A DNA stretch of 64,000 nt from Thalia democratica (GCA_965202585.1 OZ241829.1:33232001-33296000); one strand, 5' to 3'. Positions 16,990 through 64,000 are shown, counted from the stretch's first letter. Numbers and translations: made by a program. The notes: generated by a model not told the origin, from the sequence alone.

Positions 16990-17990
16990 AGTTTATTTTT
17001 ATAGTGAACAGAAATTTCGATTTTGAAATTTTTATAATAATTGTGACGTTGTAATGGTATAGTTTATTGTATGATTAGCTGAATTTGAAATACGCTGTGA
17101 ATGTTATTTTATGCTTTTTAGGAAAGTTTAAAAAGGTTATTTTGGAAAAATGTTTTAAGCTATTAGAAAGCTTTTTTTAGACTGTTGGGAAAAATGTTAT
17201 AAAATACTCGTGTTTGCCGCTTCGATTTTATTTTGTTTTAGTATTTAGTTGGTTTTAATTTTGTCAAAAAAGTATTTTTGATAATGGATGCATATGTTTT
17301 GTCTTTCGCTTTTCTTGTTTAGTGTTACGTTCTTATCTGATTTTTCGATTTCTATTTTTTCTAAGTTACAAAGTTTGCAGCCGAATTTAGTATTGAATTT
17401 TAATTTTGTCCTGTTTAATACTTCCCATTTAATTTTGTAGTCTGTATTGTTATCTTTTAAGCTCCATGTGTAATTCGCTAGTTCTGTTGTGTGTCTTTTG
17501 TTAATATTGTTGAATGATGATTTGTGGTTTCTGTATCTTTGTTTAAAGGTATTTCCTGTCGATCCTATATACTGCTTTGTTGTTTTATTTGATGTTACTG
17601 TTGCTTTATAAATTATATCTGACACTAGGCATTCGTTATTTAAAGGGCAAGGTTCTTTACGGCAATTACAAAGTTTATCTTTTATGGTGCTTTTATCGTC
17701 TATATTGCTTTTGTTTAATATTTTGTTTTTGTGAGCTATTATTTTACTTCTGAAATTATTTGTGCAACTGTAAGATATTTTGATTGTGTTTCGGTTGAAT
17801 ATTTTATGGAATGGGTGGTTTTCGTCAAATGATGTAGTAATCAGGTTTAAGAATTGTTTGCCTATTTTGGAACTTATATTTAGACTGAATGGTTGGTTGA
17901 AATATATTATGTATCAATATTTTAGTTGTTTAATAGTTTTGGATAAGAACAATATTATTTTTAATGGCAAACTACTTTATTTTTCCAAAA
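16990..17990 (-). mobile_element. 5'-truncated Penelope-like element with GIY-YIG endonuclease domain
   Basis: Minus strand: YIIYFNQPFSLNISSKIGKQFLNLI...KISYSCTNN...CNCRKEPCPLNNECLVSDIIYKATV..KQYIGST..FKQRYRNHKSSF...CKLCNLEK...LNKKSE..CIH. Stop at 17245, then 3'UTR. Confidence 0.93.
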
Positions 17991-30221: not shown

Positions 30222-33200
30222 ATGAAGTGCTCTCCTTGCCATCTAGTTGATGTTGTTTGGCAAATAATGTTAAGTGAGTAAATTTACAAATTATTAACTG
30301 TTATTTATCAAACGAAAACTTGAAAAATAGTAGAAATCTGACGGCATTGACTCTTAAATTGATGTAACCGCTGTTTTGTTTCTTTAAAATCTTGATGTTA
30401 TTTCTAATTATATTCAATTTTAAAAATAACACGTAAAAACAACATGTAATAATAAATTTAATTTTAACAAAGTGAGTTTAGCATTTGACATACTTTTGTG
30501 AAAAAAAAGTTTTGTTTATTTTGTTTTTTTTAAAGTGTGTAGCACGCCACCACTGCCGTTAAATAACGGAAAAGTGAGCGGCCCGAGCCAGCCAACTGTC
30601 GGGTCAAACTACACTTACAGCTGTGATTCTGGTTATTTGCTGAGCAAGAATTCACCAAACTACGTCGTTTGCACGGTAAACGCTACTTGGAGTTTTCAAA
30701 ATGAAAACAAGCCTGTTTGTGTCCCCAGTTAGTTTAGCTTCAATAAAATTTTCTTTATTTTTTTGCATATTAACTAAGAGCCTACTAAATTTTTGTGTTA
30801 AGGTCGCGTGGAGCATTAGAGCAGATGCTCCACCTATAATAAATTATTATAATGTTATAAAACTTATAAAACTGTATTTCTTAAAAAACTTGTTTTACCA
30901 ACAACTTATTATAACTTTATCTTACTCAAGTTTTACATAAGGTTTGATCTTACCGATTCGATCATCAGACCACAAGCCTTCGGTAGACTGAGGCCGGTTT
31001 CGTCCTTATTAGGACTCATCAGTCAGCCAAAACAGAAAAACTTGCAGTCGTCAATATACAAACGGTTCATCGCGCTTTCGCATCAGTGACGTCAGCATTG
31101 TCTTTTGTCGTGCAACATTTAATACATTGTCCACTAGGCAAGACAGCTGGTACACTCGTATTGAATACGATCAACGAAAACATCGGCCAAAGTATACAGA
31201 GCCTAAGCCTGAACTATTTCACTGCATACGAAAGTCTAGGCTTGGGCACTGTAGACTTTGGCTATATTAGTTTAAAAAAGTACTACAAAAAGGGGTGTTT
31301 TCAAATATTTAAATGTTTCCCACTTCTAAAAAAGTACAACACCTCGCCACTGGTATTACTCACCTCTTTTTTTGTTTGAACTAAATAAAAATGTAAAAAC
31401 TAATAGGTTGCAACGCTCCTCCTGCACTGAACTACGGCAAGTATTTAAATGAGACGTTGAAATTTTATGAAAAGGAAGAAGTTATCAGCTATACATGTGA
31501 TTTTGGCCCTGATAATTTTGTTGGTTTTATTAAGTGTGGTGTTGGTGGCTGGAATAGGATTCCTTTCTGCCCAGAGTATGAGCTAGCAGGTTTGTTTTTT
31601 TTTTTAATTCAGCATTTAAAGATGGCAATCACGTTTCATTGTCATTAAGTATTCAATAAAAAAAAATGTCAATTGAATAATTGAAACTTGACAAGCACAA
31701 AAGATATGTCAAATTATCCGATAAAAATTTTAATAAATGTCTAAATTTAAAAAAAATGTATAATATTGATTGTCACAGTCTAAACAGGATAAATTTCATT
31801 AATTCAAATCATCCTATTTTGTAAGGACTATAATTTTTTAGATACCAGTATGTCCCAAAACGAATCACACTAAAATTTGAAATTTTAAAACAGTTATTTA
31901 AATGCCAAGTGTCAAAAACGATGATAGCTTTATTAAAAACTAAAACGATTTCTGAAAAACTAGTCAAATATAACCACACGCCGCAAATATTTGCAACTAA
32001 ACTTGTTTCAGAATGCAAGTCCCCACCGGAAGGGATTTTTTCGAGCTGGCAAACGGAATATTATTTCGAAGAATTGAAATTTTACAGTGGCATGCAGGTG
32101 ACTTATGAGTGCAACGATGCGTACAAGTTCAAGCCCGACCAGAAAGAAGTTTTGAATTGCCAATCGGACGGCACGTGGAGCTCCTCTTACGCCCCCGAGT
32201 GTGCACAAGGTTTGAGAATATTTTTATGGAGGATACAGTGGGTTACATTTTCATTTTTAAATATCTTGATTTTAGACTTTTGTTTTAGAACTTGGATACT
32301 GTTTTAGAATTTGAGGGTGTGTTCAAAATGAAATTTTGTATAAACGAAAAGTAGAATTTTATTAATAAAAATCTTATTTTAAATTAATCTATTTTCTAAT
32401 TATCATAATCGTTTTAAAACCCAAAAGTTTAAAGTTGAATAATCCCGTACAAAAATAGAAAAAACAGTCTACCTTACTAAATTTCTTTTTCAGCTTTTTA
32501 ACTTATCAATCTCATTCGTTTTCAGTCTGTGAACTGCCGCCGTTTATAGAGAAAGGAGTGTGGAGAATAGACTCGCGTGGAAACTCTATAGCCAACAGCA
32601 TCATTTATCAGAGGCAGGTGTTCTACGTTTGCTACAGCGGCTACTCGTTCCAGGATGGTACTCGCACAACTATTGGATGTTTGTTCGGAGTCGGATGGAA
32701 ATTTAAAGAGTTGCCACAGTGCTTGAAAGGTTAAAAGCTTTAATAATAAGACACAGACATTTGTAAGTATATTTTGTATTTAAACTTGTCCTTAATATTT
32801 TAAATGTTACTTCAAAATGTTTTGATTTAAAATTTTTGAACCGTGTACCTTAGTTTTTTAGATGTAAAATCCTAGTTCTTAAGTCACTGACTTTTAAATA
32901 TATATTACAAAAATGTTGTCTGTAAGTTTTTATGTATGATTTTTTTTGTTTTTTTTTTCGCTATATAAAAATGTAATCAATACATTCAAACTATTTCAAG
33001 TTGTGTAAAAAATATTGGACTGTTTAGGTTAATTGATCATTTAGAAAATATGGTTTCTTTTTGTAGTGTTTTTATTTTGTTTTTGGAAAAAAAAAAGAAA
33101 CTTAGCTTCATATTGGCAAAAAAAAGAAAACATTAGGTTTTATAGTACATAGTACCTGTGTTAATATAATACTTACTCTAAACAAAAAGAATAATGACAT

Positions 33201-36200: not shown

Positions 36201-39200
36201 ATACACGCTCTCTCGAATCTCACGCTCGTTTATTAAGACTTTTTATACGTTTTTCATTATATCAAATTAACAAAAAAGTTTTAGATGCGCAAAGCAGTAT
36301 GTTTGACTTTTTAAAAGTTACGCTACAATTTTTTAGTTTGCATATTAATGAAAGCAAAACGAAACTTTTTAGTCTGTGATAACCCCCCATTCTTGGGAAA
36401 TGGATTTTACAATGTAACAAAATACACACTGTTTGCAACTGGAACTACTAAAGAAAGAGCTATTGAGTATTACTGTTTCAAGGGTTACTACTTCAGTGAC
36501 GAGTTTGCGGATGCGAATTATACCTGCAATCTGGGTGCGAAATGGAATCCTAAAAAGCCGCCGACTTGCATCAAAGGTTGTCAATTTTGTCTTTTGCATT
36601 TCGATTTGTAGTTTTTGTATGCTTAAAAAGTATACACTCAAAACTATTTGAAAAATTTATGCCATTATAATTAAGTTTTTTAGGTGTTAGAGTTACTAGT
36701 TTTAGTTATTTATCAAACAAATAACTTAAAGCTGCATACCGTACTTCGGTTTAAAAAGTTTTAAAGTAAATTGGGCGTCAAGTTTACCTTTAAACCTACT
36801 TCTGTATTGTAACATAAAGTATTTAATTTCGAAAAGTGTTTTTTTGTTGTTCTAGATACTCTTTACTAAAGGGTGAAGCAATTTTAAGTAAAAGCTTGGA
36901 CTCAATTACACAACTGGACTTTTTGTTTTGTTATTCAAGACTTTATATTTTGCATAAAGTAAAACCAACAAAACAGGACGTTTAGCTTTAAAATTCTAAA
37001 CTATTTTACTGTTTTACTATTCTTAAAAATACCAATACTTACTATTTATACATAAATTGTTATACTATAAAAATTCAACTAAGCTTTTATTTTAAACTCA
37101 CTTTATTGATAAGTTTTAATAATTTATTTTTAAAGTACATAACTTTTTTTATGCAGTGATTAACAAGAAAACCAAAAAAAAAAGACAAATAACGATTGAC
37201 ATTGCAGAAGGATTATTCAATAAATCTGTTATATTATTATTAAAATTAAAGATATTATTTAACACAGAGTGTGACGCGGTTCCTCAATTCAACAATTCCG
37301 GTTTGCATGCAACTGAAAATGTAAGCAGGGTTGACTCGGGAGGGAAAGAAGTGCTTGTGAACGGCACCCGCCTTACTTTCAAGTGCGAGAATCATTACGT
37401 CACAGACATCAATGTTGTCGAGTGTGACGTAGACGGCAAGTGGGCTCCAAAAGTTCATTGCTATCCAAGTTAGTGTCTTGTGTATGAAATAGATACGAGC
37501 AAACTGACTGTTTTTATTTTACTTGGCCGCGCATTTAAATTCTAAAAACTTTACTAAGCTTGCGAGAGAGTCAAAAGTACAATTTTTGATCTAGAGTTTT
37601 ACGAAAGCTGTATTTAAACCCATGTTTGTTACTTATTTTAACAGTTATTAAAATCTAAAACTAAGTGATGACAAACTGCAGATTGTGGAAAGTCGAGGGA
37701 CGTTTCAAACGCGCTTAAAAACGTGGAAAAACTGAAGATCAACGACTCTTTGACAATCGAACGATCAGCTTCGTTCGATTGTGAGAATGATCATTTCCTG
37801 ATACCTGAAGGTGCTAATACGATTTCCCGTTGCTTGATTGGAGGTACCTGGAACGAATCTAGTTTCCACTGCTTAAGAAGTGAGTTATCAAAAGCTACTT
37901 TAAGTTTGTTTTAGGTTATTAAACTGAAATTTTGAAGAAAAAGTTAGTAAAAAACATTAGTATTTTGACACTTATTGTTTTTAAATAATCTTTTATGCAT
38001 CATCCTGAACGAATTCACTGCTCAAGGAGTGAGCGGTTCAGTAAAAAAAATATTTTATTGCTATTGTGTTTGAGCCATAGAAGATTAACTTAGTATAAAA
38101 GTTTATTCTAGCTTAGTTTTTTGTTTTCATCACAAAAATTCTTTCTTGCTACAAACAAGTTTAGATACGGATAATAATTTAACTTTAAATATAATGGAAA
38201 AAAACTAGAGTCAAACTTTATTTACTATATACAGTAAAACTTTTGGAACCCTGTAGAAGTAAAGAAACATTTTATATACCGATCAAATTATCACATATAA
38301 TAGTTTTATATGACTCCTTAGTATACTAATGCATGCTGTTAACTATCATAAGCAGTTTATATATATAAATTTAAATTTGGTGGTGCACGACTCGATAACC
38401 GAAAGGTTCCTTTGTACACCAGGTCCTTAGATCAAACTTTATGAGCGCTTTTTACTTTTCTATCGTTCAATAAACATTATTTACTTGTATTTTATTTTTA
38501 CAGTTTTTGTTTTTTATAACACAAATTTTTTTATGCAACAGTTTAGTTCAGAAATATTCTGAAATAAATAATAAGTTCATTTAATATCAAAATAAGTTAA
38601 AATGAGGTAAAAGTGTTGAACGATTTTTTGAAACCAATCAAACCATAACGTACAGTGAATTTTTATGAATTGAAAGTTTTTTATGCTGTCATTCAAAATT
38701 ATTCAACTTTTATATTTTTTGCTTTCAGAATGCCCGAATTTTGATAAAACCGAGGGTCGAAGTTTCGATCTAACAAAGCTTATTGCAACTGAAAGGGAGG
38801 GATTTTTCGCCGGTGACGTAGTAAAGTTCAGCTGCGAAAATTACTACGTCATCAGTGATGCGCGAAAATCAACCGCAGAATGCTCAGACGACGGAAATTG
38901 GAACGTGACTTTTCCCCTTTGTTACAAAAGAAAGTTTTTGTTTTATCAGTAAAAACTGAACCTGCGTTTTTTTTATTATGTTAAAATTCTGTTTAACAAA
39001 AACAGTTATGGACATTTTTCTACTTATAAAACTAATCTTCAACTCGATTAATTCTTAATATTCAAAACTGTTAAAGAGACTACTATGTAAAAAAGTCGCT
39101 TAATTTAAATTGTAATATAGATTGCGGCACCCCTGAAACCATCGACGACGGAAGCTTTAACACCACGTACCGGAAGGCGACCGACGCGTCCGGAGGCGAG

Positions 39201-42200
39201 TTCAAAGTTCATCAGCAGGTCAGGTATTCGTGCAATCAGGGTCACGTGATAAAGTCGGATTCCATTTCCACGCTGGATTGCGACTCGACCAGCGGAAATT
39301 TCCAACCTCAGCTGCCTGAGTGCGTCATAAGTAAGTATGATGTTTGAAAAATATTTTCTTTTACTAAGAAGTTCAATAACGTGCTGTAAAAAGAGGTGTG
39401 CTACGCTTCAAACTATATAAAAATATGTGTTTAAAATATCAGAGTGCGTCACAAGTAAGTGCTGAAGAAATAAATAAAATTTTCCCGTTTTTATTTTTAA
39501 CCAATTTAAAAACTGACTAAAAACAAAAGTAATAAGTGTGAAATTAAATAACCTGATTTTCAGTTTTGCAAAAGAAAGAAACATTATGTACGTTACATCG
39601 TATTTATTTTACCATATGACTTAGTGAATTTAATTACTTAATTTTTCAATACAAAAAATAAATAAAAACATGTTTCAAAGTTATTAGTACAAAAATACTT
39701 GTTTAAATCAAGTGTGCACAATTTCACCACTGTTTCAAACAAACAATTTATCAAGACTGCGGAGCACCCCCCGAGTTTGCGAACACAAGCGCCCCGGCAT
39801 CCGGGTCTGTCCATTTGAACGGGAGCGTTGTGAGTTACGCATGCGAGAACGAAGGGTTCGAGATACTGCCTGAAGAAAATTACAAAGTCAGGTGCGTTGA
39901 GAACGGAACTTGGCAAGGAGAAGTCGGAAGATGCTACACAAGTATTTTTTTTATATATTGTTTTATACAAACAAAATAGTGATTAAATTTCAAATGTTTG
40001 TAACATTTATTAGCGTGGAACAATTCTTAGAAAAAAAAAATCACAATTAGAAAAATTATGTTTTCATACAAGGTTTTTTTTATATTGTAGTAACTATCCA
40101 AATTAATACCAAGTGGCAAAAGTTGTAATAATAAACTCCCAAACTCACAAACAGTGACGCGATGCAGCGAAGACGTGATCCCGACGATAGACAACTCGAA
40201 CCACGAAGTCACGGTATGGATTTTCAAAGGCGTTTACCTGCCCCGCACCCTCGTAGAGTACACGTGCAGGTCGGACTACACGATGGTGCCCGACAATTTC
40301 AGGGGCGCCGAGTGCGGTTTACACGGATCTTGGTCGTTCAAGCCAACAGGGGTTGCTGGAAAGTGCGTCAGATGTTAGTTTTCAGTTTGTATGGATGTTT
40401 TCACTAAAAAGCATGATGAGATAATGCCATCAATCCTTTATACTTATAACTAAAAAGAAAGGTAAAATTGAACATGGAAGTTTTACTCAATTTATTATCA
40501 ATATGCCATTAACTCTTTGGACTTATTTAAGTAAAAAAGCATGATAAAGTTTAAGATGTAAGTTTTACTTAACATTTGTTATTAAAAAATTCTCCCCTTA
40601 GATTTATTTAAGTAAAAAACATGGTAAAGGTAAAGGTAAAGTTAAGTTTTTTTTTATCAAAGTTTGACAACGAGTAAAAATATATATAATATGAAGTTTT
40701 CTCCAAGCTGAAATAAACTATAAAAAAGTTTTACTTTGAGTGAAAAAATTGACTTAAACCTAGAAGCAAACTTTTGTTGAAATATAAATTTTCAATTATT
40801 TTTCTACAACTTATACCAGCTTGCGGCAAGTTCCCTGCTATATCAAACGGCAAGAAAACAATTTTGGCAAGCGAAACGGTGAATTCAACAGCAATAATCG
40901 AAACCAAAGTGAAATACGAATGCGAAAGCGGAAGGACTTACACTGAAGAAGTGGCAATTGTGCAGTGCGACCTTGAAACCGGTTTGATTGATGGTAAAGT
41001 GGGAGATTGCGTGAAAGGTAAATTGATAATTTGTATACTGTTTGTTTTTATTGTGACACAAACATTATAAAACCTGCTTGGTTGATGGCAGGGTGGGGAA
41101 GAGTGTTGAAATTGATATTTCATTAAATTTATACATTTTCAGGTGATTGATTGTTAAATTTGAGCCCAGTTTAGAGTTGCTGCATATTATTATTTTGGTA
41201 ATGATTAACGTAAAATAAAACTGCCTTATAATTTAATTTTTCTTCATCACGTCTAGAGGTGAATTGTTTTTTGAAATGTCCAACAGAGTGTCCGCGAGTG
41301 AATACGACTATAAACAACGGAAAAGTGTATACTTTGCAAAAACGACCTGGTTACTTTCTTCCCGGCGACATAGTCACTTTCAAATGCGACAGCGAACACG
41401 CACTTTCAAGCGGTAACGATTCTCTCCTGTGTAGACCAGATGGTAGCTGGAACGGTGAAGACGTTGCACCCAAGTGCTATCCACGTAAGTTGTTTAAATT
41501 AACTATAATAAAATATCAGGTGTTGTGGAAATACGATTTTGCTACTTACAGACATTTAACATAAACTGAAAACAACTATTAATACAAAATTTTATTTTGA
41601 ATAAACATAAGATATTTAACTAGCAAATTACTAAATTCGGTGATAAAGGTGTTTTATGGGCATTATTTTTGCTTTTATTGCCGTTGTTTTTGTTTTCCAT
41701 TACTAATTGTAAGACAACCACTTAATAATAAGTTAATTTTAACTCTTTGTTGTTACTGATAAAAATTGAACTAAATAAAATTCTTTCCAAGCTTAAATAT
41801 TGTATACCTTAAAACACATTTTATAAAACATTGAATTTTTAATTACCTTAGAGTTATGGTCAATTTAGTAGAAAGTTTCAACGAAATACGTGTAAAAGTA
41901 TAAAAAATAGTTTGAAATTTACTTGAAGTTTTAACCTTCGATCATTATAGTTCAATTAATTTAAAATGATCTTCAATCATTAGTATTGTTCTACACGTTC
42001 AAATAACAGTTCAAATAACAAACCACAACTTTTAACTTAGCTTTGAATTAAAAATAAATATATAAAATTTGCTATCTAGATTGTCCAAAAGATTCCTTTA
42101 CTCTTCTAAATGGAAATGCTTCAAAAACTCAACAACATAGCGCTTGGAATCAGACATCTATTTACAAATGTAGTGACAAGTATACACTTGATCCAGCAGA

Positions 42201-48200: not shown

Positions 48201-51200
48201 AACAAATCATGTTATGTCCAAAAACCTACATTATTTTCTTTACCATTTAAAAAAAAAATGTTTTCACTGTAGACTTTAAATAGTCTGACATTATGATTGT
48301 TTTTTATTACGTTAAGATTAGAATGAAAATGTTTGAAAATGATTGTTTAAAACTGTAGGAGAAATTGTATGTTTTATTAAAAATCTTTTCACAGATTGCG
48401 AATATATGAAAGTGATTAATGCCAAAACATATATAAAAGGCGAAAGTGAAATCATTACTCGTTCTGTACCTTACAAAACCGAATTGACTTACATTTGCAA
48501 CAGTGGTTACAGTCCTACCGATGCTCAAGAGGTCAATTGTGGCAATGATGGTAATATTGACATTTCTGGCGTTAGATGCTACCCAGGTACATTTTAACTT
48601 TTTGATTGTTTTGGTATTTTATTAAAACAAGTGTGGAATAGATAAGTATTTCACTGAAGTATTACTATTTTTAGTTATAACTTTTAAATAAGTTAATTTT
48701 AACTTTTTATTGTTAATGGTTAAAATTTAACTAAATTAAATTCTTTCTAAAAACATCTCTTTCATGTTTTTACAACTAAAACTTACTTTGTCCTTAATTT
48801 TCAATAACTTGTTTCATATTTTTAGGAAATGTAGTATGCACTATTTGCAAAACTCTTTCAATTATATATGACATAAGTACAAAATATAAACTTTTCGTTT
48901 ATATATTCTTAAGATTAAAGATAATTTCATGGAAATTAAGAAAAAAATACATTACCATTGCTTTTTATTAGGTTAGAAATAGACTTATAATATTCAAAAA
49001 TGTTTTTTTTTTAATTTAGCAGAAGATCTATTTAAAAAAAGTGACTTTGTTAACCGTTGTCAGTTAGTTTTACATAATAAAACCTGATGAACTCTATAAT
49101 TTGAAACTTTACATCTCAAAAAGTAGTTTGAGATTTACTCGAAGTTTTAACCTTCGATCCTTATGGTTCAATTAATTTAAAATGATCTTCTATCATTAGT
49201 ATTGTTTAGATAAAAAAGTACAAATAAAAAACCACAACATTTAACTTCGCTTTGAATTAAAAATAAATATATAAAATTTGCTATCTAGATTGTCCAAAAG
49301 ATTCCTTTACTCTTCTAAATGGAAATGCTTCAAAAACTCAACAACATAGCGCTTGGAATCAGACATCTATTTACAAATGTAGTGACAAGTATACACTTGA
49401 TCCAGCAGATAACAACAAGAGAGATTGTGTTGAGAACGGCTTGTGGGTAGGAGATGTAGGAACTTGTTATCCTGGTGAGAAAATCGATTCTAAAAAATTG
49501 TGAAATTTAACTGAATAAATCATATATATCAACACTTTTAAATTTAAGATAAAACACGTATAAGTAGAAAAAAGATTACATGTTTTGTGAATATACAAAG
49601 TTTTATTTACAAATAATGCCCATTTTGTGCAATAATGTATTAGAAACAAATCATGTTATGTCCAAAAACCTACATTATTTTCTTTACCATTTAAAAAAAA
49701 AATGTTTTCACTGTAGACTTTAAATAGTCTGACATTATGATTGTTTTTTATTACGTTAAGATTAGAATGAAAATGTTTGAAAATGATTGTTTAAAACTGT
49801 AGGAGAAATTGTATGTTTTATTAAAAATCTTTTCACAGATTGCGAATATATGAAAGTGATTAATGCCAAAACATATATAAAAGGCGAAAGTGAAATCATT
49901 ACTCGTTCTGTACCTTACAAAACCGAATTGACTTACATTTGCAACAGTGGTTACAGTCCTACCGATGCTCAAGAGGTCAATTGTGGCAATGATGGTAATA
50001 TTGACATTTCTGGCGTTAGATGCTACCCAGGTACATTTTAACTTTTTGATTGTTTTGGTATTTTATTAAAACAAGTGTGGAATAGATAAGTATTTCACTG
50101 AAGTATTACTATTTTTAGTTATAACTTTTAAATAAGTTAATTTTAACTTTTTATTGTTAATGGTTAAAATTTAACTAAATTAAATTCTTTCTAAAAACAT
50201 CTCTTTCATGTTTTTACAACTAAAACTTACTTTGTCCTTAATTTTCAATAACTTGTTTCATATTTTTAGGAAATGTAGTATGCACTATTTGCAAAACTCT
50301 TTCAATTATATATGACATAAGTACAAAATATAAACTTTTCGTTTATATATTCTTAAGATTAAAGATAATTTCATGGAAATTAAGAAAAAAATACATTACC
50401 ATTGCTTTTTATTAGGTTAGAAATAGACTTATAATATTCAAAAATGTTTTTTTTTTAATTTAGCAGAAGATCTATTTAAAAAAAGTGACTTTGTTAACCG
50501 TTGTCAGTTAGTTTTACATAATAAAACCTGATGAACTCTATAATTTGAAACTTTACATCTCAAAAAGTAGTTTGAGATTTACTCGAAGTTTTAACCTTCG
50601 ATCCTTATGGTTCAATTAATTTAAAATGATCTTCTATCATTAGTATTGTTTAGATAAAAAAGTACAAATAAAAAACCACAACATTTAACTTCGCTTTGAA
50701 TTAAAAATAAATATATAAAATTTGCTATCTAGATTGTCCAAAAGATTCCTTTACTCTTCTAAATGGAAATGCTTCAAAAACTCAACAACATAGCGCTTGG
50801 AATCAGACATCTATTTACAAATGTAGTGACAAGTATACACTTGATCCAGCAGATAACAACAAGAGAGATTGTGTTGAGAACGGCTTGTGGGTAGGAGATG
50901 TAGGAACTTGTTATCCTGGTGAGAAAATCGATTCTAAAAAATTGTGAAATTTAACTGAATAAATCATATATATCAACACTTTTAAATTTAAGATAAAACA
51001 CGTATAAGTAGAAAAAAGATTACATGTTTTGTGAATATACAAAGTTTTATTTACAAATAATGCCCATTTTGTGCAATAATGTATTAGAAACAAATCATGT
51101 TATGTCCAAAAACCTACATTATTTTCTTTACCATTTAAAAAAAAAATGTTTTCACTGTAGACTTTAAATAGTCTGACATTATGATTGTTTTTTATTACGT

Positions 51201-54200
51201 TAAGATTAGAATGAAAATGTTTGAAAATGATTGTTTAAAACTGTAGGAGAAATTGTATGTTTTATTAAAAATCTTTTCACAGATTGCGAATATATGAAAG
51301 TGATTAATGCTAAAACATATATAAAAGGCGAAAGTGAAATCATTACTCGTTCTGTACCTTACAAAACCGAATTGACTTACATTTGCAACAGTGGTTACAG
51401 TCCTACCGATGCTCAAGAGGTCAATTGTGGCAATGATGGTAATATTGACATTTCTGGCGTTAGATGCTACCCAGGTACATTTTAACTTTTTGATTGTTTT
51501 GGTATTTTATTAAAACAAGTGTGGAATAGATAAGTATTTCACTGAAGTATTACTATTTTTAGTTATAACTTTTAAATAAGTTAATTTTAACTTTTTATTG
51601 TTAATGTTTAAAATTTAACTAAATTAAATTCTTTCTAAAAACATCTCCTTCATGTTTTTACAACTAAAACTTATTTTGTCCTTAATTTTTAATATATTTT
51701 TTCATATATTTAGGAAATGTACTATGCACTATTTGCAAAACTCTTTCAATTATATATGACATAAGTACAAAATACAAACGTTTCGTTTATATATTCTTAA
51801 GATTAAAGATAATTTCATGGAAAATAAGAAAAAAATACATTACCATTGCTTTTTATTAGGTTAGAAATAGACTTATAATATTCAAAAACGTTTTTTTTAT
51901 ATTTAGCAGAAGATCTATTTAAAAAAAGTGACTTTGTTAACCGTTGTCAGTTAGTTTTACATAATAAAACCTGATGAACTCTATAATTTGAAACTTTACA
52001 TCTCAAAAAGTAGTTTGAGATTTACTCGAAGTTTTAACCTTCGATCCTTATGGTTCAATTAATTTAAAATGATCTTCTATCATTAGTATTGTTTAGATAA
52101 AAAAGTACAAATAACAAACCACAACATTTAACTTCGCTTTGAATTAAAAATAAATATATAAAATTTGCTATCTAGATTGTCCAAAAGATTCCTTTACTCT
52201 TCTAAATGGAAATGCTTCAAAAACTCAACAACATAGCGCTTGGAATCAGACATCTATTTACAAATGTAGTGACAAGTATACACTTGATCCAGCAGATAAC
52301 AACAAGAGAGATTGTGTTGAGAACGGCTTGTGGGTAGGAGATGTAGGAACTTGTTATCCTGGTGAGAAAATCGATTCTAAAAAATTGTGAAATTTAACTG
52401 AATAAACCATATATATCAACACTTTTAAATTTAAGATAAAACACGTATAAGTAGAAAAAAGATTACATGTTTTGTGAATATACAAAGTTTTATTTACAAA
52501 TAATGCCCATTTTGTGCAATAATGTATTAGAAACAAATCATGTTATGTCCAAAAACCTACATTATTTTCTTTACCATTTAAAAAAAAATGTTTTCACTGT
52601 AGACTTTAAATAGTCTGACATTATGATTGTTTTTTATTACGTTAAGATTAGAATGAAAATGTTTGAAAATGATTGTTTAAAACTGTAGGAGAAATTGTAT
52701 GTTTTATTAAAAATCTTTTCACAGATTGCGAATATATGAAAGTGATTAATGCCAAAACATATATAAAAGGCGAAAGTGAAATCATTACTCGTTCTGTACC
52801 TTACAAAACCGAATTGACTTACATTTGCAACAGTGGTTACAGTCCTACCGATGCTCAAGAGGTCAATTGTGGCAATGATGGTAATATTGACATTTCTGGC
52901 GTTAGATGCTACCCAGGTACATTTTAACTTTTTGATTGTTTTGGTATTTTATTAAAACAAGTGTGGAATAGATAAGTATTTCACTGAAGTATTACTATTT
53001 TTAGTTATAACTTTTAAATAAGTTAATTTTAACTTTTTATTGTTAATGGTTAAAATTTAACTAAATTAAATTCTTTCTAAAAAGATCTCCTTCATGTTTT
53101 TACAACTAAAACTTATTTTGTCCTTAATTTTTAATATATTTTTTCATATATTTAGGAAATGTACTATGCACTATTTGCAAAACTCTTTCAATTATATATG
53201 ACATAAGTACAAAATACAAACGTTTCGTTTATATATTCTTAAGATTAAAGATAATTTCATGGAAAATAAGAAAAAAATACATTACCATTGCTTTTTATTA
53301 GGTTAGAAATAGACTTATAATATTCAAAAACGTTTTTTTTATATTTAGCAGAAGATCTATTTAAAAAAAGTGACTTTGTTAACCGTTGTCAGTTAGTTTT
53401 ACATAATAAAACCTGATGAACTCTATAATTTGAAACTTTACATCTCAAAAAGTAGTTTGAGATTTACTCGAAGTTTTAACCTTCGATCCTTATGGTTCAA
53501 TTAATTTAAAATGATCTTCTATCATTAGTATTGTTTAGATAAAAAAGTACAAATAACAAACCACAACATTTAACTTCGCTTTGAATTAAAAATAAATATA
53601 TAAAATTTGCTATCTAGATTGTCCAAAAGATTCCTTTACTCTTCTAAATGGAAATGCTTCAAAAACTCAACAACATAGCGCTTGGAATCAGACATCTATT
53701 TACAAATGTAGTGACAAGTATACACTTGATCCAGCAGATAACAACAAGAGAGATTGTGTTGAGAACGGCTTGTGGGTAGGAGATGTAGGAACTTGTTATC
53801 CTGGTGAGAAAATCGATTCTAAAAAATTGTGAAATTTAACTGAATAAATCATATATATCAACACTTTTAAATTTAAGATAAAACACGTATAAGTAGAAAA
53901 AAGATTACATGTTTTGTGAATATACAAAGTTTTATTTACAAATAATGCCCATTTTGTGCAATAATGTATTAGAAACAAATCATGTTATGTCCAAAAACCT
54001 ACATTATTTTCTTTACCATTTAAAAAAAAAATGTTTTCACTGTAGACTTTAAATAGTCTGACATTATGATTGTTTTTTATTACGTTAAGATTAGAATGAA
54101 AATGTTTGAAAATGATTGTTTAAAACTGTAGGAGAAATTGTATGTTTTATTAAAAATCTTTTCACAGATTGCGAATATATGAAAGTGATTAATGCCAAAA

Positions 54201-57200
54201 CATATATAAAAGGCGAAAGTGAAATCATTACTCGTTCTGTACCTTACAAAACCGAATTGACTTACATTTGCAACAGTGGTTACAGTCCTACCGATGCTCA
54301 AGAGGTCAATTGTGGCAATGATGGTAATATTGACATTTCTGGCGTTAGATGCTACCCAGGTACATTTTAACTTTTTGATTGTTTTGGTATTTTATTAAAA
54401 CAAGTGTGGAATAGATAAGTATTTCACTGAAGTATTACTATTTTTAGTTATAACTTTTAAATAAGTTAATTTTAACTTTTTATTGTTAATGGTTAAAATT
54501 TAACTAAATTAAATTCTTTCTAAAAACATCTCTTTCATGTTTTTACAACTAAAACTTACTTTGTCCTTAATTTTCAATAACTTGTTTCATATTTTTAGGA
54601 AATGTAGTATGCACTATTTGCAAAACTCTTTCAATTATATATGACATAAGTACAAAATATAAACTTTTCGTTTATATATTCTTAAGATTAAAGATAATTT
54701 CATGGAAATTAAGAAAAAAATACATTACCATTGCTTTTTATTAGGTTAGAAATAGACTTATAATATTCAAAAATGTTTTTTTTTTAATTTAGCAGAAGAT
54801 CTATTTAAAAAAAGTGACTTTGTTAACCGTTGTCAGTTAGTTTTACATAATAAAACCTGATGAACTCTATAATTTGAAACTTTACATCTCAAAAAGTAGT
54901 TTGAGATTTACTCGAAGTTTTAACCTTCGATCCTTATGGTTCAATTAATTTAAAATGATCTTCTATCATTAGTATTGTTTAGATAAAAAAGTACAAATAA
55001 AAAACCACAACATTTAACTTCGCTTTGAATTAAAAATAAATATATAAAATTTGCTATCTAGATTGTCCAAAAGATTCCTTTACTCTTCTAAATGGAAATG
55101 CTTCAAAAACTCAACAACATAGCGCTTGGAATCAGACATCTATTTACAAATGTAGTGACAAGTATACACTTGATCCAGCAGATAACAACAAGAGAGATTG
55201 TGTTGAGAACGGCTTGTGGGTAGGAGATGTAGGAACTTGTTATCCTGGTGAGAAAATCGATTCTAAAAAATTGTCAAATTTAACTGAATAAATCATATAT
55301 ATCAACACTTTTAAATTTAAGATAAAACACGTATAAGTAGAAAAATGATTACATGTTTTGTGAATATACAAAGTTTTATTTACAAATAATGCCCATTTTG
55401 TGCAATAATGTATTAGAAACAAATCATGTTATGTCCAAAAACCTACATTATTTTCTTTACCATTTAAAAAAAAAATGTTTTCACTGTAGACTTTAAATAG
55501 TCTGACATTATGATTGTTTTTTATTACGTTAAGATTAGAATGAAAATGTTTGAAAATGATTGTTTAAAACTGTAGGAGAAATTGTATGTTTTATTAAAAA
55601 TCTTTTCACAGATTGCGAATATATGAAAGTGATTAATGCCAAAACATATATAAAAGGCGAAAGTGAAATCATTACTCGTTCTGTACCTTACAAAACCGAA
55701 TTGACTTACATTTGCAACAGTGGTTACAGTCCTACCGATGCTCAAGAGGTCAATTGTGGCAATGATGGTAATATTGACATTTCTGGCGTTAGATGCTACC
55801 CAGGTACATTTTAACTTTTTGATTGTTTTGGTATTTTATTAAAACAAGTGTGGAATAGATAAGTATTTCACTGAAGTATTACTATTTTTAGTTATAACTT
55901 TTAAATAAGTTAATTTTAACTTTTTATTGTTAATGGTTAAAATTTAACTAAATTAAATTCTTTCTAAAAACATCTCTTTCATGTTTTTACAACTAAAACT
56001 TACTTTGTCCTTAATTTTCAATAACTTGTTTCATATTTTTAGGAAATGTAGTATGCACTATTTGCAAAACTCTTTCAATTATATATGACATAAGTACAAA
56101 ATATAAACTTTTCGTTTATATATTCTTAAGATTAAAGATAATTTCATGGAAATTAAGAAAAAAATACATTACCATTGCTTTTTATTAGGTTAGAAATAGA
56201 CTTATAATATTCAAAAATGTTTTTTTTTTAATTTAGCAGAAGATCTATTTAAAAAAAGTGACTTTGTTAACCGTTGTCAGTTAGTTTTACATAATAAAAC
56301 CTGATGAACTCTATAATTTGAAACTTTACATCTCAAAAAGTAGTTTGAGATTTACTCGAAGTTTTAACCTTCGATCCTTATGGTTCAATTAATTTAAAAT
56401 GATCTTCTATCATTAGTATTGTTTAGATAAAAAAGTACAAATAACAAACCACAACATTTAACTTCGCTTTGAATTAAAAATAAATATATAAAATTTGCTA
56501 TCTAGATTGTCCAAAAGATTCCTTTACTCTTCTAAATGGAAATGCTTCAAAAACTCAACAACATAGCGCTTGGAATCAGACATCTATTTACAAATGTAGT
56601 GACAAGTATACACTTGATCCAGCAGATAACAACAAGAGAGATTGTGTTGAGAACGGCTTGTGGGTAGGAGATGTAGGAACTTGTTATCCTGGTGAGAAAA
56701 TCGATTCTAAAAAATTGTGAAATTTAACTGAATAAATCATATATATCAACACTTTTAAATTTAAGATAAAACACGTATAAGTAGAAAAAAGATTACATGT
56801 TTTGTGAATATACAAAGTTTTATTTACAAATAATGCCCATTTTGTGCAATAATGTATTAGAAACAAATCATGTTATGTCCAAAAACCTACATTATTTTCT
56901 TTACCATTTAAAAAAAAAATGTTTTCACTGTAGACTTTAAATAGTCTGACATTATGATTGTTTTTTATTACGTTAAGATTAGAATGAAAATGTTTGAAAA
57001 TGATTGTTTAAAACTGTAGGAGAAATTGTATGTTTTATTAAAAATCTTTTCACAGATTGCGAATATATGAAAGTGATTAATGCCAAAACATATATAAAAG
57101 GCGAAAGTGAAATCATTACTCGTTCTGTACCTTACAAAACCGAATTGACTTACATTTGCAACAGTGGTTACAGTCCTACCGATGCTCAAGAGGTCAATTG

Positions 57201-60200
57201 TGGCAATGATGGTAATATTGACATTTCTGGCGTTAGATGCTACCCAGGTACATTTTAACTTTTTGATTGTTTTGGTATTTTATTAAAACAAGTGTGGAAT
57301 AGATAAGTATTTCACTGAAGTATTACTATTTTTAGTTATAACTTTTAAATAAGTTAATTTTAACTTTTTATTGTTAATGTTTAAAATTTAACTAAATTAA
57401 ATTCTTTCTAAAAACATCTCCTTCATGTTTTTACAACTAAAACTTATTTTGTCCTTAATTTTTAATATATTTTTTCATATATTTAGGAAATGTACTATGC
57501 ACTATTTGCAAAACTCTTTCAATTATATATGACATAAGTACAAAATACAAACGTTTCGTTTATATATTCTTAAGATTAAAGATAATTTCATGGAAAATAA
57601 GAAAAAAATACATTACCATTGCTTTTTATTAGGTTAGAAATAGACTTATAATATTCAAAAACGTTTTTTTTATATTTAGCAGAAGATCTATTTAAAAAAA
57701 GTGACTTTGTTAACCGTTGTCAGTTAGTTTTACATAATAAAACCTGATGAACTCTATAATTTGAAACTTTACATCTCAAAAAGTAGTTTGAGATTTACTC
57801 GAAGTTTTAACCTTCGATCCTTATGGTTCAATTAATTTAAAATGATCTTCTATCATTAGTATTGTTTAGATAAAAAAGTACAAATAACAAACCACAACAT
57901 TTAACTTCGCTTTGAATTAAAAATAAATATATAAAATTTGCTATCTAGATTGTCCAAAAGATTCCTTTACTCTTCTAAATGGAAATGCTTCAAAAACTCA
58001 ACAACATAGCGCTTGGAATCAGACATCTATTTACAAATGTAGTGACAAGTATACACTTGATCCAGCAGATAACAACAAGAGAGATTGTGTTGAGAACGGC
58101 TTGTGGGTAGGAGATGTAGGAACTTGTTATCCTGGTGAGAAAATCGATTCTAAAAAATTGTGAAATTTAACTGAATAAATCATATATATCAACACTTTTA
58201 AATTTAAGATAAAACACGTATAAGTAGAAAAAAGATTACATGTTTTGTGAATATACAAAGTTTTATTTACAAATAATGCCCATTTTGTGCAATAATGTAT
58301 TAGAAACAAATCATGTTATGTCCAAAAACCTACATTATTTTCTTTACCATTTAAAAAAAAAATGTTTTCACTGTAGACTTTAAATAGTCTGACATTATGA
58401 TTGTTTTTTATTACGTTAAGATTAGAATGAAAATGTTTGAAAATGATTGTTTAAAACTGTAGGAGAAATTGTATGTTTTATTAAAAATCTTTTCACAGAT
58501 TGCGAATATATGAAAGTGATTAATGCCAAAACATATATAAAAGGCGAAAGTGAAATCATTACTCGTTCTGTACCTTACAAAACCGAATTGACTTACATTT
58601 GCAACAGTGGTTACAGTCCTACCGATGCTCAAGAGGTCAATTGTGGCAATGATGGTAATATTGACATTTCTGGCGTTAGATGCTACCCAGGTACATTTTA
58701 ACTTTTTGATTGTTTTGGTATTTTATTAAAACAAGTGTGGAATAGATAAGTATTTCACTGAAGTATTACTATTTTTAGTTATAACTTTTAAATAAGTTAA
58801 TTTTAACTTTTTATTGTTAATGTTTAAAATTTAACTAAATTAAATTCTTTCTAAAAACATCTCCTTCATGTTTTTACAACTAAAACTTATTTTGTCCTTA
58901 ATTTTTAATATATTTTTTCATATATTTAGGAAATGTACTATGCACTATTTGCAAAACTCTTTCAATTATATATGACATAAGTACAAAATACAAACGTTTC
59001 GTTTATATATTCTTAAGATTAAAGATAATTTCATGGAAAATAAGAAAAAAATACATTACCATTGCTTTTTATTAGGTTAGAAATAGACTTATAATATTCA
59101 AAAACTTTTTTTTTATATTTAGCAGAAGATCTATTTAAAAAAAGTGACTTTGTTAACCGTTGTCAGTTAGTTTTACATAATAAAACCTGATGAACTCTAT
59201 AATTTGAAACTTTACATCTCAAAAAGTAGTTTGAGATTTACTCGAAGTTTTAACCTTCGATCCTTATGGTTCAATTAATTTAAAATGATCTTCTATCATT
59301 AGTATTGTTTAGATAAAAAAGTACAAATAACAAACCACAACATTTAACTTCGCTTTGAATTAAAAATAAATATATAAAATTTGCTATCTAGATTGTCCAA
59401 AAGATTCCTTTACTCTTCTAAATGGAAATGCTTCAAAAACTCAACAACATAGCGCTTGGAATCAGACATCTATTTACAAATGTAGTGACAAGTATACACT
59501 TGATCCAGCAGATAACAACAAGAGAGATTGTGTTGAGAACGGCTTGTGGGTAGGAGATGTAGGAACTTGTTATCCTGGTGAGAAAATCGATTCTAAAAAA
59601 TTGTGAAATTTAACTGAATAAACCATATATATCAACACTTTTAAATTTAAGATAAAACACGTATAAGTAGAAAAAAGATTACATGTTTTGTGAATATACA
59701 AAGTTTTATTTACAAATAATGCCCATTTTGTGCAATAATGTATTAGAAACAAATCATGTTATGTCCAAAAACCTACATTATTTTCTTTACCATTTAAAAA
59801 AAAATGTTTTCACTGTAGACTTTAAATAGTCTGACATTATGATTGTTTTTTATTACGTTAAGATTAGAATGAAAATGTTTGAAAATGATTGTTTAAAACT
59901 GTAGGAGAAATTGTATGTTTTATTAAAAATCTTTTCACAGATTGCGAATATATGAAAGTGATTAATGCCAAAACATATATAAAAGGCGAAAGTGAAATCA
60001 TTACTCGTTCTGTACCTTACAAAACCGAATTGACTTACATTTGCAACAGTGGTTACAGTCCTACCGATGCTCAAGAGGTCAATTGTGGCAATGATGGTAA
60101 TATTGACATTTCTGGCGTTAGATGCTACCCAGGTACATTTTAACTTTTTGATTGTTTTGGTATTTTATTAAAACAAGTGTGGAATAGATAAGTATTTCAC

Positions 60201-63018
60201 TGAAGTATTACTATTTTTAGTTATAACTTTTAAATAAGTTAATTTTAACTTTTTATTGTTAATGGTTAAAATTTAACTAAATTAAATTCTTTCTAAAAAG
60301 ATCTCCTTCATGTTTTTACAACTAAAACTTACTTTGTCCTTAATTTTCAATAACTTGTTTCATATTTTTAGGAAATGTAGTATGCACTATTTGCAAAACT
60401 CTTTCAATTATATATGACATAAGTACAAAATACAAACTTTTCGTTTATATATTCTTAAGATTAAAGATAATTTAATGGAAATTAAGAAAAAACTACATTA
60501 TAATTGCTTTTTATTAGGTTAGAAATAGACTTATAATATTCAAAAACGTTTTTTTTTTAATTTAGCAGAAGATTTATTTAAAAAAAGTAACTTTGTTAAC
60601 CTTTGTCAGTTAGTTTTACATAATAAAACATGATGAACTCTATAATTTGAAACTTTACATCTCAAAAAGTAGTTTGAGATTTACTCGAAGTTTTAACCTT
60701 CGATCCTTATGGTTCAATTAATTTAAAATGATCTTCTATCATTAGTATTGTTTAGATAAAAAAGTACAAATAACAAACCACAACATTTAACTTCGCTTTG
60801 AATTAAAAATAAATATATAAAATTTGCTATCTAGATTGTCCAAAAGATTCCTTTACTCTTCTAAATGGAAATGCTTCAAAAACTCAACAACATAGCGCTT
60901 GGAATCAGACATCTATTTACAAATGTAGTGACAAGTATACACTTGATCCAGCAGATAACAACAAGAGAGATTGTGTTGAGAACGGCTTGTGGGTAGGAGA
61001 TGTAGGAACTTGTTATCCTGGTGAGAAAATCGATTCTAAAAAATTGTGAAATTTAACTGAATAAATCATATATATCAACACTTTTAAATTTAAGATAAAA
61101 CACGTATAAGTAGAAAAAATATTACATGTTTTGTGAATATACAAAGTTTTATTTACAAATAATGCCCATTTTGTGCAATAATGTATTAGAAACAAATCAT
61201 GTTATGTCCAAAAACCTACATTATTTTCTTTACCATTTAAAAAAAAATGTTTTCACTGTAGACTTTAAATAGTCTGACATTATGATTGTTTTTTATTACG
61301 TTAAGATTAGAATGAAAATGTTTGAAAATGATTGTTTAAAACTGTAGGAGAAATTGTATGTTTTATTAAAAATCTTTTCACAGATTGCGAATATATGAAA
61401 GTGATTAATGCCAAAACATATATAAAAGGCGAAAGTGAAATCATTACTCGTTCTGTACCTTACAAAACCGAATTGACTTACATTTGCAACAGTGGTTACA
61501 GTCCTACCGATGCTCAAGAGGTCAATTGTGGCAATGATGGTAATATTGACATTTCTGGCGTTAGATGCTACCCAGGTACATTTTAACTTTTTGATTGTTT
61601 TGGCATTTTATTAAAACAAGTGTGGAATAGATAAGTATTTCACTGAAGTATTACTATTTTTAGTTATAACTTTTAAATAAGTTAATTTTAACTTTTTATT
61701 GTTAATGTTTAAAATTTAACTAAATTAAATTCTTTCTAAAAACATCTCCTTCATGTTTTTACAACTAAAACTTATTTTGTCCTTAATTTTTAATATATTT
61801 TTTCATATATTTAGGAAATGTACTATGCACTATTTGCAAAACTCTTTCAATTATATATGACATAAGTACAAAATACAAACGTTTCGTTTATATATTCTTA
61901 AGATTAAAGATAATTTCATGGAAAATAAGAAAAAAATACATTACCATTGCTTTTTATTAGGTTAGAAATAGACTTATAATATTCAAAAACGTTTTTTTTA
62001 AATTTAGCAGAAGATCTATTTAAAAAAAGTGACTTTGTTAACCGTTGTCAGTTAGTTTTACATAATAAAACCTGATGAACTCTATAATTTGAAACTTTAC
62101 ATCTCAAAAAGTAGTTTGAGATTTACTCGAAGTTTTAACCTTCGATCCTTATGGTTCAATTAATTTAAAATGATCTTCTATCATTAGTATTGTTTAGATA
62201 AAAAAGTACAAATAACAAACCACAACATTTAACTTCGCTTTGAATTAAAAATAAATATATAAAATTTGCTATCTAGATTGTCCAAAAGATTCCTTTACTC
62301 TTCTAAATGGAAATGCTTCAAAAACTCAACAACATAGCGCTTGGAATCAGACATCTATTTACAAATGTAGTGACAAGTATACACTTGATCCAGCAGATAA
62401 CAACAAGAGAGATTGTGTTGAGAACGGCTTGTGGGTAGGAGATGTAGGAACTTGTTATCCTGGTGAGAAAATCGATTCTAAAAAATTGTGAAATTTAACT
62501 GAATAAATCATATATATCAACACTTTTAAATTTAAGATAAAACACGTATAAGTAGAAAAAAGATTACATGTTTTGTGAATATACAAAGTTTTATTTACAA
62601 ATAATGCCCATTTTGTGCAATAATGTATTAGAAACAAATCATGTTATGTCCAAAAACCTACATTATTTTCTTTACCATTTAAAAAAAAAATGTTTTCACT
62701 GTAGACTTTAAATAGTCTGACATTATGATTGTTTTTTATTACGTTAAGATTAGAATGAAAATGTTTGAAAATGATTGTTTAAAACTGTAGGAGAAATTGT
62801 ATGTTTTATTAAAAATCTTTTCACAGATTGCGAATATATGAAAGTGATTAATGCCAAAACATATATAAAAGGCGAAAGTGAAATCATTACTCGTTCTGTA
62901 CCTTACAAAACCGAATTGACTTACATTTGCAACAGTGGTTACAGTCCTACCGATGCTCAAGAGGTCAATTGTGGCAATGATGGTAATATTGACATTTCTG
63001 GCGTTAGATGCTACCCAG
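30222..63018 (+). CDS. Giant multi-Sushi (CCP/SCR) domain protein, at least 48 CCP modules; 3' end not in window
   Basis: Putative first coding exon 30222-30272 (MKCSPCHLVDVVWQIML, low confidence), then 18 unique and 30 tandem CCP exons. All are phase 1-1, 183-219 nt, each with 4 Cys. No terminal exon or TM segment seen. Confidence 0.9.
30536..41484 (+). CDS. 18 unique Sushi/CCP exons (S1-S18)
   Basis: 30536-30727, 31407-31589, 32012-32209, 32526-32729, 34050-34241, 34607-34813, 35105-35302, 35528-35728, 35932-36129, 36373-36576, 37268-37468, 37682-37879, 38729-38929, 39121-39330, 39756-39941, 40155-40373, 40820-41017, 41287-41484. Each is open in frame with the C..C..C..(W)..C pattern. Confidence 0.92.
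30986..31028 (-). ncRNA. Minimal type I hammerhead ribozyme, antisense in the S1-S2 intron, U16.1 replaced by C (probably inactive)
   Basis: Minus strand: GGCTGA-CTGATGA-GTCCT aata AGGAC-GAAA-CCGG-C-C-TCAGTC. Stems I and II are well paired; stem III would be palindromic ACCGGT but reads ACCGGC. Confidence 0.8.
33883..33920 (+). pseudogene. Truncated relic copy of the 5' end of exon S5
   Basis: TAAGAATGTAACGAAAACCCAGAGGTGGCAA vs CAGAATGCAACGAAACACCAGAGGTGGCAA at 34047; the upstream intron sequence is also similar. Confidence 0.75.
38379..38480 (+). repeat. Short dispersed repeat family, copy 6 (intronic)
   Basis: GGTGGTGCACGACTCGATAACCGAAAGG..CAGGTCCTTAG..GAGCGC..TCGTTCAATAAAC. Confidence 0.8.
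42080..63018 (+). CDS. 30 tandem Sushi exons: 15 x exon A (186 nt) and 15 x exon B (192 nt)
   Basis: A starts: 42080, 43523, 44967, 46410, 47845, 49289, 50733, 52176, 53618, 55062, 56506, 57949, 59392, 60835, 62277 (DCPKDSFTLLNGNASKTQQHSAWNQTSIYKCSDKYTLDPADNNKRDCVENGLWVGDVGTCYP). B starts: 42630, 44073, 45517, 46960, 48395, 49839, 51283, 52725, 54168, 55612, 57056, 58499, 59941, 61384, 62827 (DCEYMKVINAKTYIKGESEIITRSVPYKTELTYICNSGYSPTDAQEVNCGNDGNIDISGVRCYP). All AG/GT sites appear intact. Confidence 0.93.
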
Positions 63019-63880
63019 GTACATTTTAACTTTTTGATTGTTTTGGTATTTTATTAAAACAAGTGTGGAATAGATAAGTATTTCACTGAAGTATTACTAT
63101 TTTTAGTTATAACTTTTAAATAAGTTAATTTTAACTTTTTATTGTTAATGATTAAAATTTAACTAAATTAAATTCTTTCTAAAAACATCTCCTTCATGTT
63201 TTTACAAAGTTAGAAACTAGTTTGAAAGCTAAAATATTATATAGTTTAAACCACTTTTTATAAAACATTTAAATTTTAATTACTTTTAGAGTTATAGTCA
63301 GTTTAGTAGAAAGTTTCAAAAATAGACTGACAAAAAATTATTTTCCATTGCCGACTTCCTTAATATGTTGAAATTTTCTTAAAATCGATTTTGTCCTTTT
63401 TTTTTTTTATAACTTAATTCAAATTTTTAGGAAATATACTTTGCATTTTTTGTAAAACTTGTACAATGAAAAAAACTATGACATAAGTTTAAAACACAAC
63501 CGTTTCGTTTATATATTCTTAAGATTAAAGATATTTTCATAGAAAAAAATACATTATCATTGCTTTTTACTAAACTAGAAATAGACTGGTAGTATTTGAA
63601 AACGTTTTTCTTTTAACTTTAGCAGAAAATATATTTTAAAAAAATCTTTTTTAATCTTTATCTGTTAGTCCCTACGTAACAAAACTTGTTGAAATCTATA
63701 CTTTAAAACGTTATATCTCAAATATGCGTTTAAAATTAACTTGAAGTTTTAACCTTCAATGCTTATAGTTCAATTAACTTAACATGACTTTTAAACCTTA
63801 GTATTGTTTAGATGAAAAAGTACACAAAAAAAATTACAACTTTTAACATATTTTTTGATTAAAAAAAATATACAAAATTT

Positions 63881-63900
63881 GCTATCTATATTTTCCATCG
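63881..63900 (+). pseudogene. Dead 16th copy of exon A (acceptor lost, exon truncated)
   Basis: GCTATCTATATTTTCCATCG in place of GCTATCTAGATTGTCCAAAA: AG is AT, the Cys codon TGT is TTT, and homology ends within about 10 nt. Confidence 0.8.
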
Positions 63901-64000
63901 ATTTTAACATTTTTCTTTGTTAATTCTTAAATTTTTATATATTTGATTCATTTTACTTAATTTTTAGTATCACTGTTACCCCTAACTCTTACCCTTGGTC

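Follow-up and report, generated by a model that had tools for sequence, protein, structure and literature searches.

Two human genes illustrate how identical modules can lengthen an extracellular protein: in LPA, the repeated kringle IV-2 (KIV-2) unit is approximately 5.5 kb long and carries two exons, while in CR1, the unit of the long homologous repeats is approximately 18 kb long and specifies seven CCP (Sushi) modules. Both arrays consist of near-identical units, arranged head to tail, which contain whole in-frame exons. Such arrays are further marked by exons that enter the mature mRNA and by a copy number that differs among individuals. Long chains of CCP modules encoded by phase 1-1 exons occur in human factor H (20 CCPs) and in common CR1 (30 CCPs), as well as in SVEP1, CSMD and the Ciona protein XP_026694042.1. 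In the selectins (an N-terminal lectin domain, an EGF domain, two to nine CCPs, a transmembrane anchor and a cytoplasmic tail) and in Drosophila furrowed, a C-type lectin domain and a CCP chain occur in one extracellular protein; in the lecticans, which are secreted into the matrix (aggrecan and versican, G3 region: EGF-CTLD-CCP), a C-terminal lectin domain lies beside a CCP. The Ca2+/sugar site of C-type lectin domains carries the motifs EPN or QPD plus WND.

The locus described here, in the salp Thalia democratica, consists of parts that are individually familiar, and its kind of array is already known from LPA and CR1. It was found in a window of 64,000 nt, the whole stretch of DNA that we have analysed (GCA_965202585.1, OZ241829.1; C5:33,232,001-33,296,000 of the 802-Mb assembly), and extends 4.4 kb beyond the 3′ edge of that window; coordinates above 64,000 keep the window numbering. 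The interval from 30,222 to approximately 68,365 (plus strand) probably constitutes one protein-coding gene of about 38 kb with 55 exons, which reads from a start exon through unique CCP exons and a tandem array of CCP exons into a lectin tail. The model comprises 10,536 coding bases (3,511 codons) with no internal stop when the frame is checked exon by exon; AG/GT borders flank every one of the 55 exons, the phases agree throughout, and the GC content is 47.5% in the exons versus 25.5% in the introns. In total, the model specifies 50 CCP modules: 18 unique ones, 30 in the array and two downstream of it.

Judged by their architecture, LPA KIV-2 and the CR1 long homologous repeats are the closest analogues of the array: the units are near-identical and follow each other head to tail with complete in-frame exons within one predicted gene, there are two exons per unit as in KIV-2, and the repeated modules are CCPs as in CR1. 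The unit here is smaller, at 1.44 kb, the array has a four-unit higher-order structure, and the lengthening of the protein is predicted from genomic DNA. The pairing of C-type lectin domain and CCP chain recalls the selectins and furrowed; in contrast to the selectins, the lectin domains are C-terminal, the CCPs number 50, and neither an EGF domain nor a hydrophobic anchor was found before the stop codon. A C-terminal lectin domain beside a CCP is shared with the lecticans, but no Ig or link domains, GAG region or EGF domain were found here, and the bulk of the predicted product is CCP. Unlike proteins of the factor H/CR1 type, which have CCP modules only, be they anchored in the membrane or not, the model ends in lectin-type domains; with respect to the multi-CCP giants at large, no VWA, pentraxin, CUB, trefoil or EGF domain was seen, and the resemblance is of the generic kind that any CCP fold would give.

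A pattern scan together with a splice-site scan identified 48 CCP-type exons between 30,536 and 63,018 on the plus strand. The length of each is a multiple of three, each is preceded by AG and followed by GT, and all are in phase 1-1 with one module per exon, which is the usual structure of CCP genes; the donor of the thirteenth exon is peculiar (see below). The earlier note on this DNA had proposed a giant protein with at least 48 Sushi modules, all in phase 1-1, and this stands: 48 one-module exons with checked borders follow the start exon. The Pfam scan suggested in the same place bears out the identity of the domain, as 15 of the 18 unique exons, exons A and B of the array and both downstream CCPs score above the gathering threshold of Sushi (PF00084; cut-off 20.7 bits). 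The exons starting at 31,407, 35,528 and 40,820 fall below that threshold and show the four-cysteine pattern only. A CCP typically spans about 60 residues with four spaced cysteines and, in most cases, a tryptophan ahead of the fourth; this tryptophan is absent from exon B and from E17.

The unique exons, all on the plus strand, are located at 30536-30727, 31407-31589, 32012-32209, 32526-32729, 34050-34241 and 34607-34813 (E01-E06), at 35105-35302, 35528-35728, 35932-36129, 36373-36576, 37268-37468 and 37682-37879 (E07-E12), and at 38729-38920, 39121-39330, 39756-39941, 40155-40373, 40820-41017 and 41287-41484 (E13-E18). Their pairwise identity ranges between 13 and 42%. They are preceded by the start exon (30222..30273, plus strand; MKCSPCHLVDVVWQIML), with the ATG at 30,222 and a length of 52 nt, i.e., 17 codons plus one base, in front of a phase-1 donor, GTGAGT. 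It is short and hydrophobic, yet a weak candidate for a signal peptide. The paralogue at C5:16.09 Mb carries a 52-nt exon of equal phase (MVCSPCSVVTAVWFTSI), about 600 bp ahead of its first CCP, and the two share a motif (MKCSPC..V..VW here; MVCSPC..V..VW in the paralogue). Since the paralogue exon matches in length, phase and motif, the start exon is probably real.

The intron between E01 and E02 contains a GC-rich island (window 30960-31380; up to 47% GC versus about 25% around it) with a CRE octamer, TGACGTCA, at 31087-31094; this island might serve as a promoter or enhancer within the locus. Another CRE octamer occurs at 35607, inside coding exon E08.

In E13 (38729..38920, plus strand), the sole in-phase GT splits the codon for the fourth cysteine (T|GTTACA), and no ordinary in-phase GT donor was found past that cysteine. 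The donor site is identical in four paralogues, and GTTA donors are frequent elsewhere within the gene model; T|GTTACA is thus probably the true donor of E13. Joined to the next exon, it yields a tyrosine codon, whereby CCP13 is left with three cysteines and the cysteine count of the mature model is odd, possibly implying a free thiol in CCP13.

The array of CCP exons (41902..63207, plus strand) comprises 14.6 units. They are 1,442-1,444 bp long, apart from one of 1,435 bp, and in each of them exon A (186 nt) is followed by exon B (192 nt). By assembly count, 30 of the 48 CCP modules in the window thus belong to 15 copies of one 1,443-bp two-exon cassette. We have defined the array with BLAST and MAFFT; Tandem Repeats Finder, with a longest period of 500 bp, is blind to it. 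In unit 1, exon A is located at 42080..42265 (Pfam Sushi, 22.6 bits) and exon B, the CCP that lacks the usual tryptophan, at 42630..42821 (23.0 bits). Further copies of exon A start at 43523, 44967, 46410, 47845, 49289, 50733 and 52176 (units 2-8) and at 53618, 55062, 56506, 57949, 59392, 60835 and 62277 (units 9-15); those of exon B start at 44073, 45517, 46960, 48395, 49839, 51283 and 52725 (units 2-8) and at 54168, 55612, 57056, 58499, 59941, 61384 and 62827 (units 9-15), the last one ending at 63018. All of them are on the plus strand.

The units are 97.6-100% identical. Exon A specifies the same 61 residues in 14 of the 15 copies (unit 2 has a leucine-to-proline change), and the exon B peptide is identical in all 15. 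Across the units, three of 378 exonic sites are variable; the A-B intron has seven such sites out of 364, and the B-A intron 55 out of 702. The latter occurs in two versions, in the order Y-Y-X-X, which amounts to a four-unit higher-order repeat: units four apart differ by 0-5 bases, and neighbours of unlike type by 16-20. The array would most likely have grown by unequal crossing-over, by single 1.44-kb units at first and by the four-unit block later.

Three of the units (U05, U06 and U09) are identical, and only a single unit is left of the array in short-read assemblies, so the number of 15 might be an artefact of assembly, the true array being shorter, longer or variable. The units hold private substitutions and one 8-bp deletion, though, and these variants and the ordered four-unit pattern are not what collapse or over-expansion would create. 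We consider a false count quite unlikely; moreover, it would touch the number of units, and the array as such would stand. A 1,542-bp metagenome contig from ENA matches the unit at 99.9% identity and closes on itself, a 99-bp terminal overlap giving a period of 1,443 bp. The unit is present in two independent marine metagenome assemblies; sequences of the locus were found in Tara and other marine metagenome assemblies. Given the private variants, the higher-order pattern and the independently observed period, the array is real DNA.

Downstream of the last unit lies a diverged, older copy of the B-to-A intron (63388..63897, plus strand; about 78% identity to the array intron). In the paralogue at C5:16.03 Mb, this intron is followed by an A exon, which is missing here between the intron copy and the next CCP. 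Unrelated, partly dispersed-repeat DNA (63,897-65,039; 1.1 kb) takes the place of this lost terminal A exon. The dispersed repeat (window 63900-64000 and L004:900-2250, where L004 positions equal window positions minus 63,000) has a translation that includes ITVTPN.YP and occurs in many copies of about 80% identity on several chromosomes; together with a low-complexity stretch rich in asparagine codons, it occupies the site of the lost exon.

The earlier note had described the protein as CCP-only. This does not hold, since two lectin-type domains follow in frame on the same strand past the last array exon, and the terminal one is Pfam-positive. The tail begins 2.2 kb and ends 5.3 kb past the last array exon, with matching phases. 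All of its parts are on the plus strand: the intron that leads into it (2.2 kb in total; 63898..64000 is its start) is followed by a downstream CCP (65247-65435), a lectin-like domain in two exons with an internal phase-2 intron (65793-65916 and 66316-66647), a second downstream CCP (66894-67073) and a C-type lectin domain, again in two exons (67563-67689 and 68083-68365), which ends in CEIKMPEE. The stop codon is at 68,363-68,365, and an AATAAA at 68473 lies 108 nt beyond it. Thus, where an annotation for transmembrane, GPI or terminal exons had been advised, we found the lectin tail, the stop and an AATAAA, and no membrane anchor. Another CCP-like exon was considered at 67,213-67,346 and rejected: its sole in-phase donor gives a stop with the next exon.

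The terminal lectin exon alone scores 26.3 bits with Pfam Lectin_C (PF00059; cut-off 22.6). Its best solved relatives are Mincle, SP-D and langerin (E about 1e-3), and EPS and MDD stand at the positions of the classical EPN and WND. In protein libraries, a word search with the last lectin exon returned genomic metagenome contigs only. The first lectin-like domain has EPN and LND and lacks one disulfide. It displays the motifs WIG.T, W..(G/D)EP(N/S) and (L/M)(N/D)D, and language-model (atlas) features point to Lectin_C (0.90-0.92). No match to it was found in Pfam (E up to 10), in a PDB profile search or with hhalign against the terminal lectin exon, and AlphaFold modelled the exon of its C-terminal half, taken alone, with a pLDDT of 42.5. 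From its motifs and the language-model lead, we call the first domain divergent and lectin-like.

Further downstream, at 9 and 15 kb, we noticed a pair of similar ORFs, both intron-less, about 205 residues long and containing several cysteines (L005:4462-5079, plus strand; L006:310-924, minus strand), neither of which matched Pfam.

The 2.2-kb gap with repeat DNA between the fifteenth exon B and the next CCP invites the question of whether the locus holds two or more genes: one for the CCPs in front, one for the CCP-lectin part behind, and the array as a part of one of them or of neither. The GC-rich island and its CRE octamer could also be cited in favour of a second gene, as they lie inside the locus, although near its 5′ end, between E01 and E02. 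Against such a partition, the stretch from E18 to the lectin tail yielded no stop, no start exon and no poly(A) signal context, and the phases match at every junction. Furthermore, a compact paralogue accommodates both this start exon and this tail in 13 kb, and front and tail likewise occur together in the sister locus (C5:6.14-6.126 Mb). Separate genes are therefore very unlikely, and we continue with the single-gene model.

Paralogues of the gene are located at C5:6.14, C5:16.0-16.1, C6:26.78 and C2:30.58 Mb and on C903. Exons E13-E18 are carried by those on C6, C2 and C903, at C5:16.11 Mb and by the sister at C5:6.14 Mb, and their DNA identity to paralogues on C5, C6, C2 and C903 is 80-92%. 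In the sister locus (C5:6.14-6.126 Mb), E13-E18 are 92% identical in DNA; the downstream CCP shares 82% of its amino acids, the tail DNA has an identity of about 90% (from 66,626 at the latest), and the terminal lectin exon shares 73% of its amino acids. Genome searches found no match to A-type or B-type exons in the sister at C5:6.14 Mb. After E18, an additional, A-related CCP is present in the four paralogues that we have read (C5:6.14 Mb, C6, C2 and C903) and has been lost here. In C6, C2 and C903, it is followed by arrays of A-type exons, of 6-10 copies with a period of about 750 bp and open frames, while the paralogues at C5:16.03 and 16.08 Mb have the order B, A, CCP, lectin-like domain, CCP, as here. 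An array between the conserved CCP segment and the lectin tail is thus a trait of several family members. Most of the paralogues seen have single-exon, A-type units; the unit here has two exons, and its copy number is the highest among the loci examined. Since start exon, E13-E18, array and lectin tail recur in this order among the paralogues, the locus reads as one gene and as a member of a family.

The identities of unit and flanks disagree between loci. The unit here shares about 94% identity with that at C5:16.03 Mb, but the flanks of these two loci share only 78%; conversely, the loci at C5:16.03 and 16.08 Mb have flanks that are 97% alike and units that are only 77-90% alike. This disagreement indicates that sequence has moved between loci.

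Several observations concern the wider family. Copies of the terminal lectin exon lie behind the sister gene at C5:6,093,363, 6,109,681 and 6,126,157 (minus strand), 16.4 kb apart and with 72-73% amino-acid identity. Of these three, only the first was seen with a preceding CCP region in common with the locus here; they may belong to sister genes in tandem or serve as spare lectin heads. In the paralogue at C5:16.08 Mb (L014-L017; 19,534-20,976 on the reverse-complemented concatenation, in gene orientation), a 1.4-kb exon fuses a CCP with a Thr/Ala-rich, mucin-like repeat (TTTAEA...), directly ahead of the B and A exons. Two long exon arrays of another family are found at C5:26,318,000-26,327,600 and 26,393,000-26,406,600 (minus strand), where CCP exons that are 41% identical to exon A recur with a period of about 598 bp, in dozens of copies.

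Between paralogues, indels within exons involve whole codons only. The dN/dS ratio against the paralogues is 0.3-0.5 for exon A (0.35-0.46), both downstream CCPs and the N-terminal half of the lectin-like domain. It is about 1 or higher for the C-terminal half of the latter, and 1.7-2.4 for exon B. Exon B appears to be constrained nonetheless, because it keeps its frame, four cysteines and splice sites at 23% divergence; in an unconstrained simulation, the absence of stops together with four retained cysteines had P = 0.013. This pattern fits a fixed scaffold whose surface is free to change.

Protein-level searches with exon B returned little. A word search found the genomic ORF of the window itself only. 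An exhaustive search retrieved no transcript-derived or annotated protein, but rather genomic ORFs (that of the window and one from a paralogue allele) and generic multi-CCP proteins with at most 39% identity; the best named match was the 'SVEP1-like' protein of Ciona (XP_026694042.1; 35% identity, 31 Sushi). For a role as a complement regulator or in allorecognition, raised in the earlier note, we found no evidence. Binding of C3b/C4b and decay-acceleration or cofactor activity, which define complement regulators, have no signature in sequence; the similarity to named proteins is generic (35% or less), and a complement function is not indicated.

Several points speak against the single-gene model: the search with exon B that retrieved no transcript-derived or annotated protein, the poor signal peptide, the donor of E13, the loss of the terminal A exon, the fast change of exon B and of the C-terminal half of the lectin-like domain, and the failure of Pfam, PDB and profile searches to match the first lectin-like domain. 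Some of these bear on an alternative in which the gene is real, but the array is young, largely neutral and wholly or partly skipped in the mRNA, or the locus is decaying, so that the protein would have far fewer than 50 modules. With differences of 0-2% between units, there would have been no time for selection to act on them; the terminal A exon is gone, exon B has a dN/dS above 1, and its search in the protein libraries yielded nothing derived from a transcript. Skipping of any subset of exons in frame is a formal possibility that follows from phase 1-1, by which any number of them can drop out. Nevertheless, all 30 array exons keep their AG/GT borders and open frames, and the open-frame arrays of A-type exons at the same position in at least four paralogues argue for a maintained part of the gene. 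A skipped array or a decaying locus is, in our estimation, unlikely. We thus retain the single gene with a putative transcript in which all array exons would be included.

We picture the product of the single gene as a rod of 50 beads that would be secreted, carry many glycans and, if extended, measure about 0.15-0.2 micrometre. An extracellular rod is plausible: the short hydrophobic start exon is conserved, sequons for N-glycosylation are many, and no membrane segment was found in the 55-exon model. The array would then act as a spacer that sets the length from the N-terminal segment of diverse CCPs to a C-terminal head of glycan-binding type, with putative sugar binding. The likeliest function of such a protein would be that of a lectin or tether, either soluble or bound to the matrix. 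If expressed as modelled, it would have one of the longest CCP chains described, with 50 modules, and offer a clean non-vertebrate case of a protein lengthened by recent tandem expansion of an exon cassette. Taken with its paralogues, the locus suggests a family of salp genes whose conserved CCP segment is set apart from the lectin heads by a region of varying repeat length.

In the salp genome paper that we consulted (PMC10686999), sushi, lectin and complement go unmentioned. In another pelagic tunicate, filter-house proteins use CCP and C-lectin domains (PMC3390340), for which reason filter feeding or surface defence would be functions worth testing. As a long shot, the A-type array could be a 'length ruler' that is under selection and changes fast, within a family of salp CCP rods with lectin tips; rod length would then differ between paralogues and perhaps between individuals. 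Such rods could help to build the mucous net used for feeding or select particles in it, or they could mark self and non-self in the colonial chain stage, and the conserved three-cysteine CCP13 could provide a free thiol for the covalent pairing of rods.

Rfam and tRNA scans of the window gave no matches. Upstream of the gene, the minus strand carries actin-like exons (window 4500-6900) and sulfotransferase-like exons (window 10400-12400). Closer to the start exon, an ORF of 222 residues with a GIY-YIG-type motif (window 17248-17913, minus strand) looks like the remnant of a mobile element, and a relative of this ORF is present in both of the 16-Mb paralogue regions.
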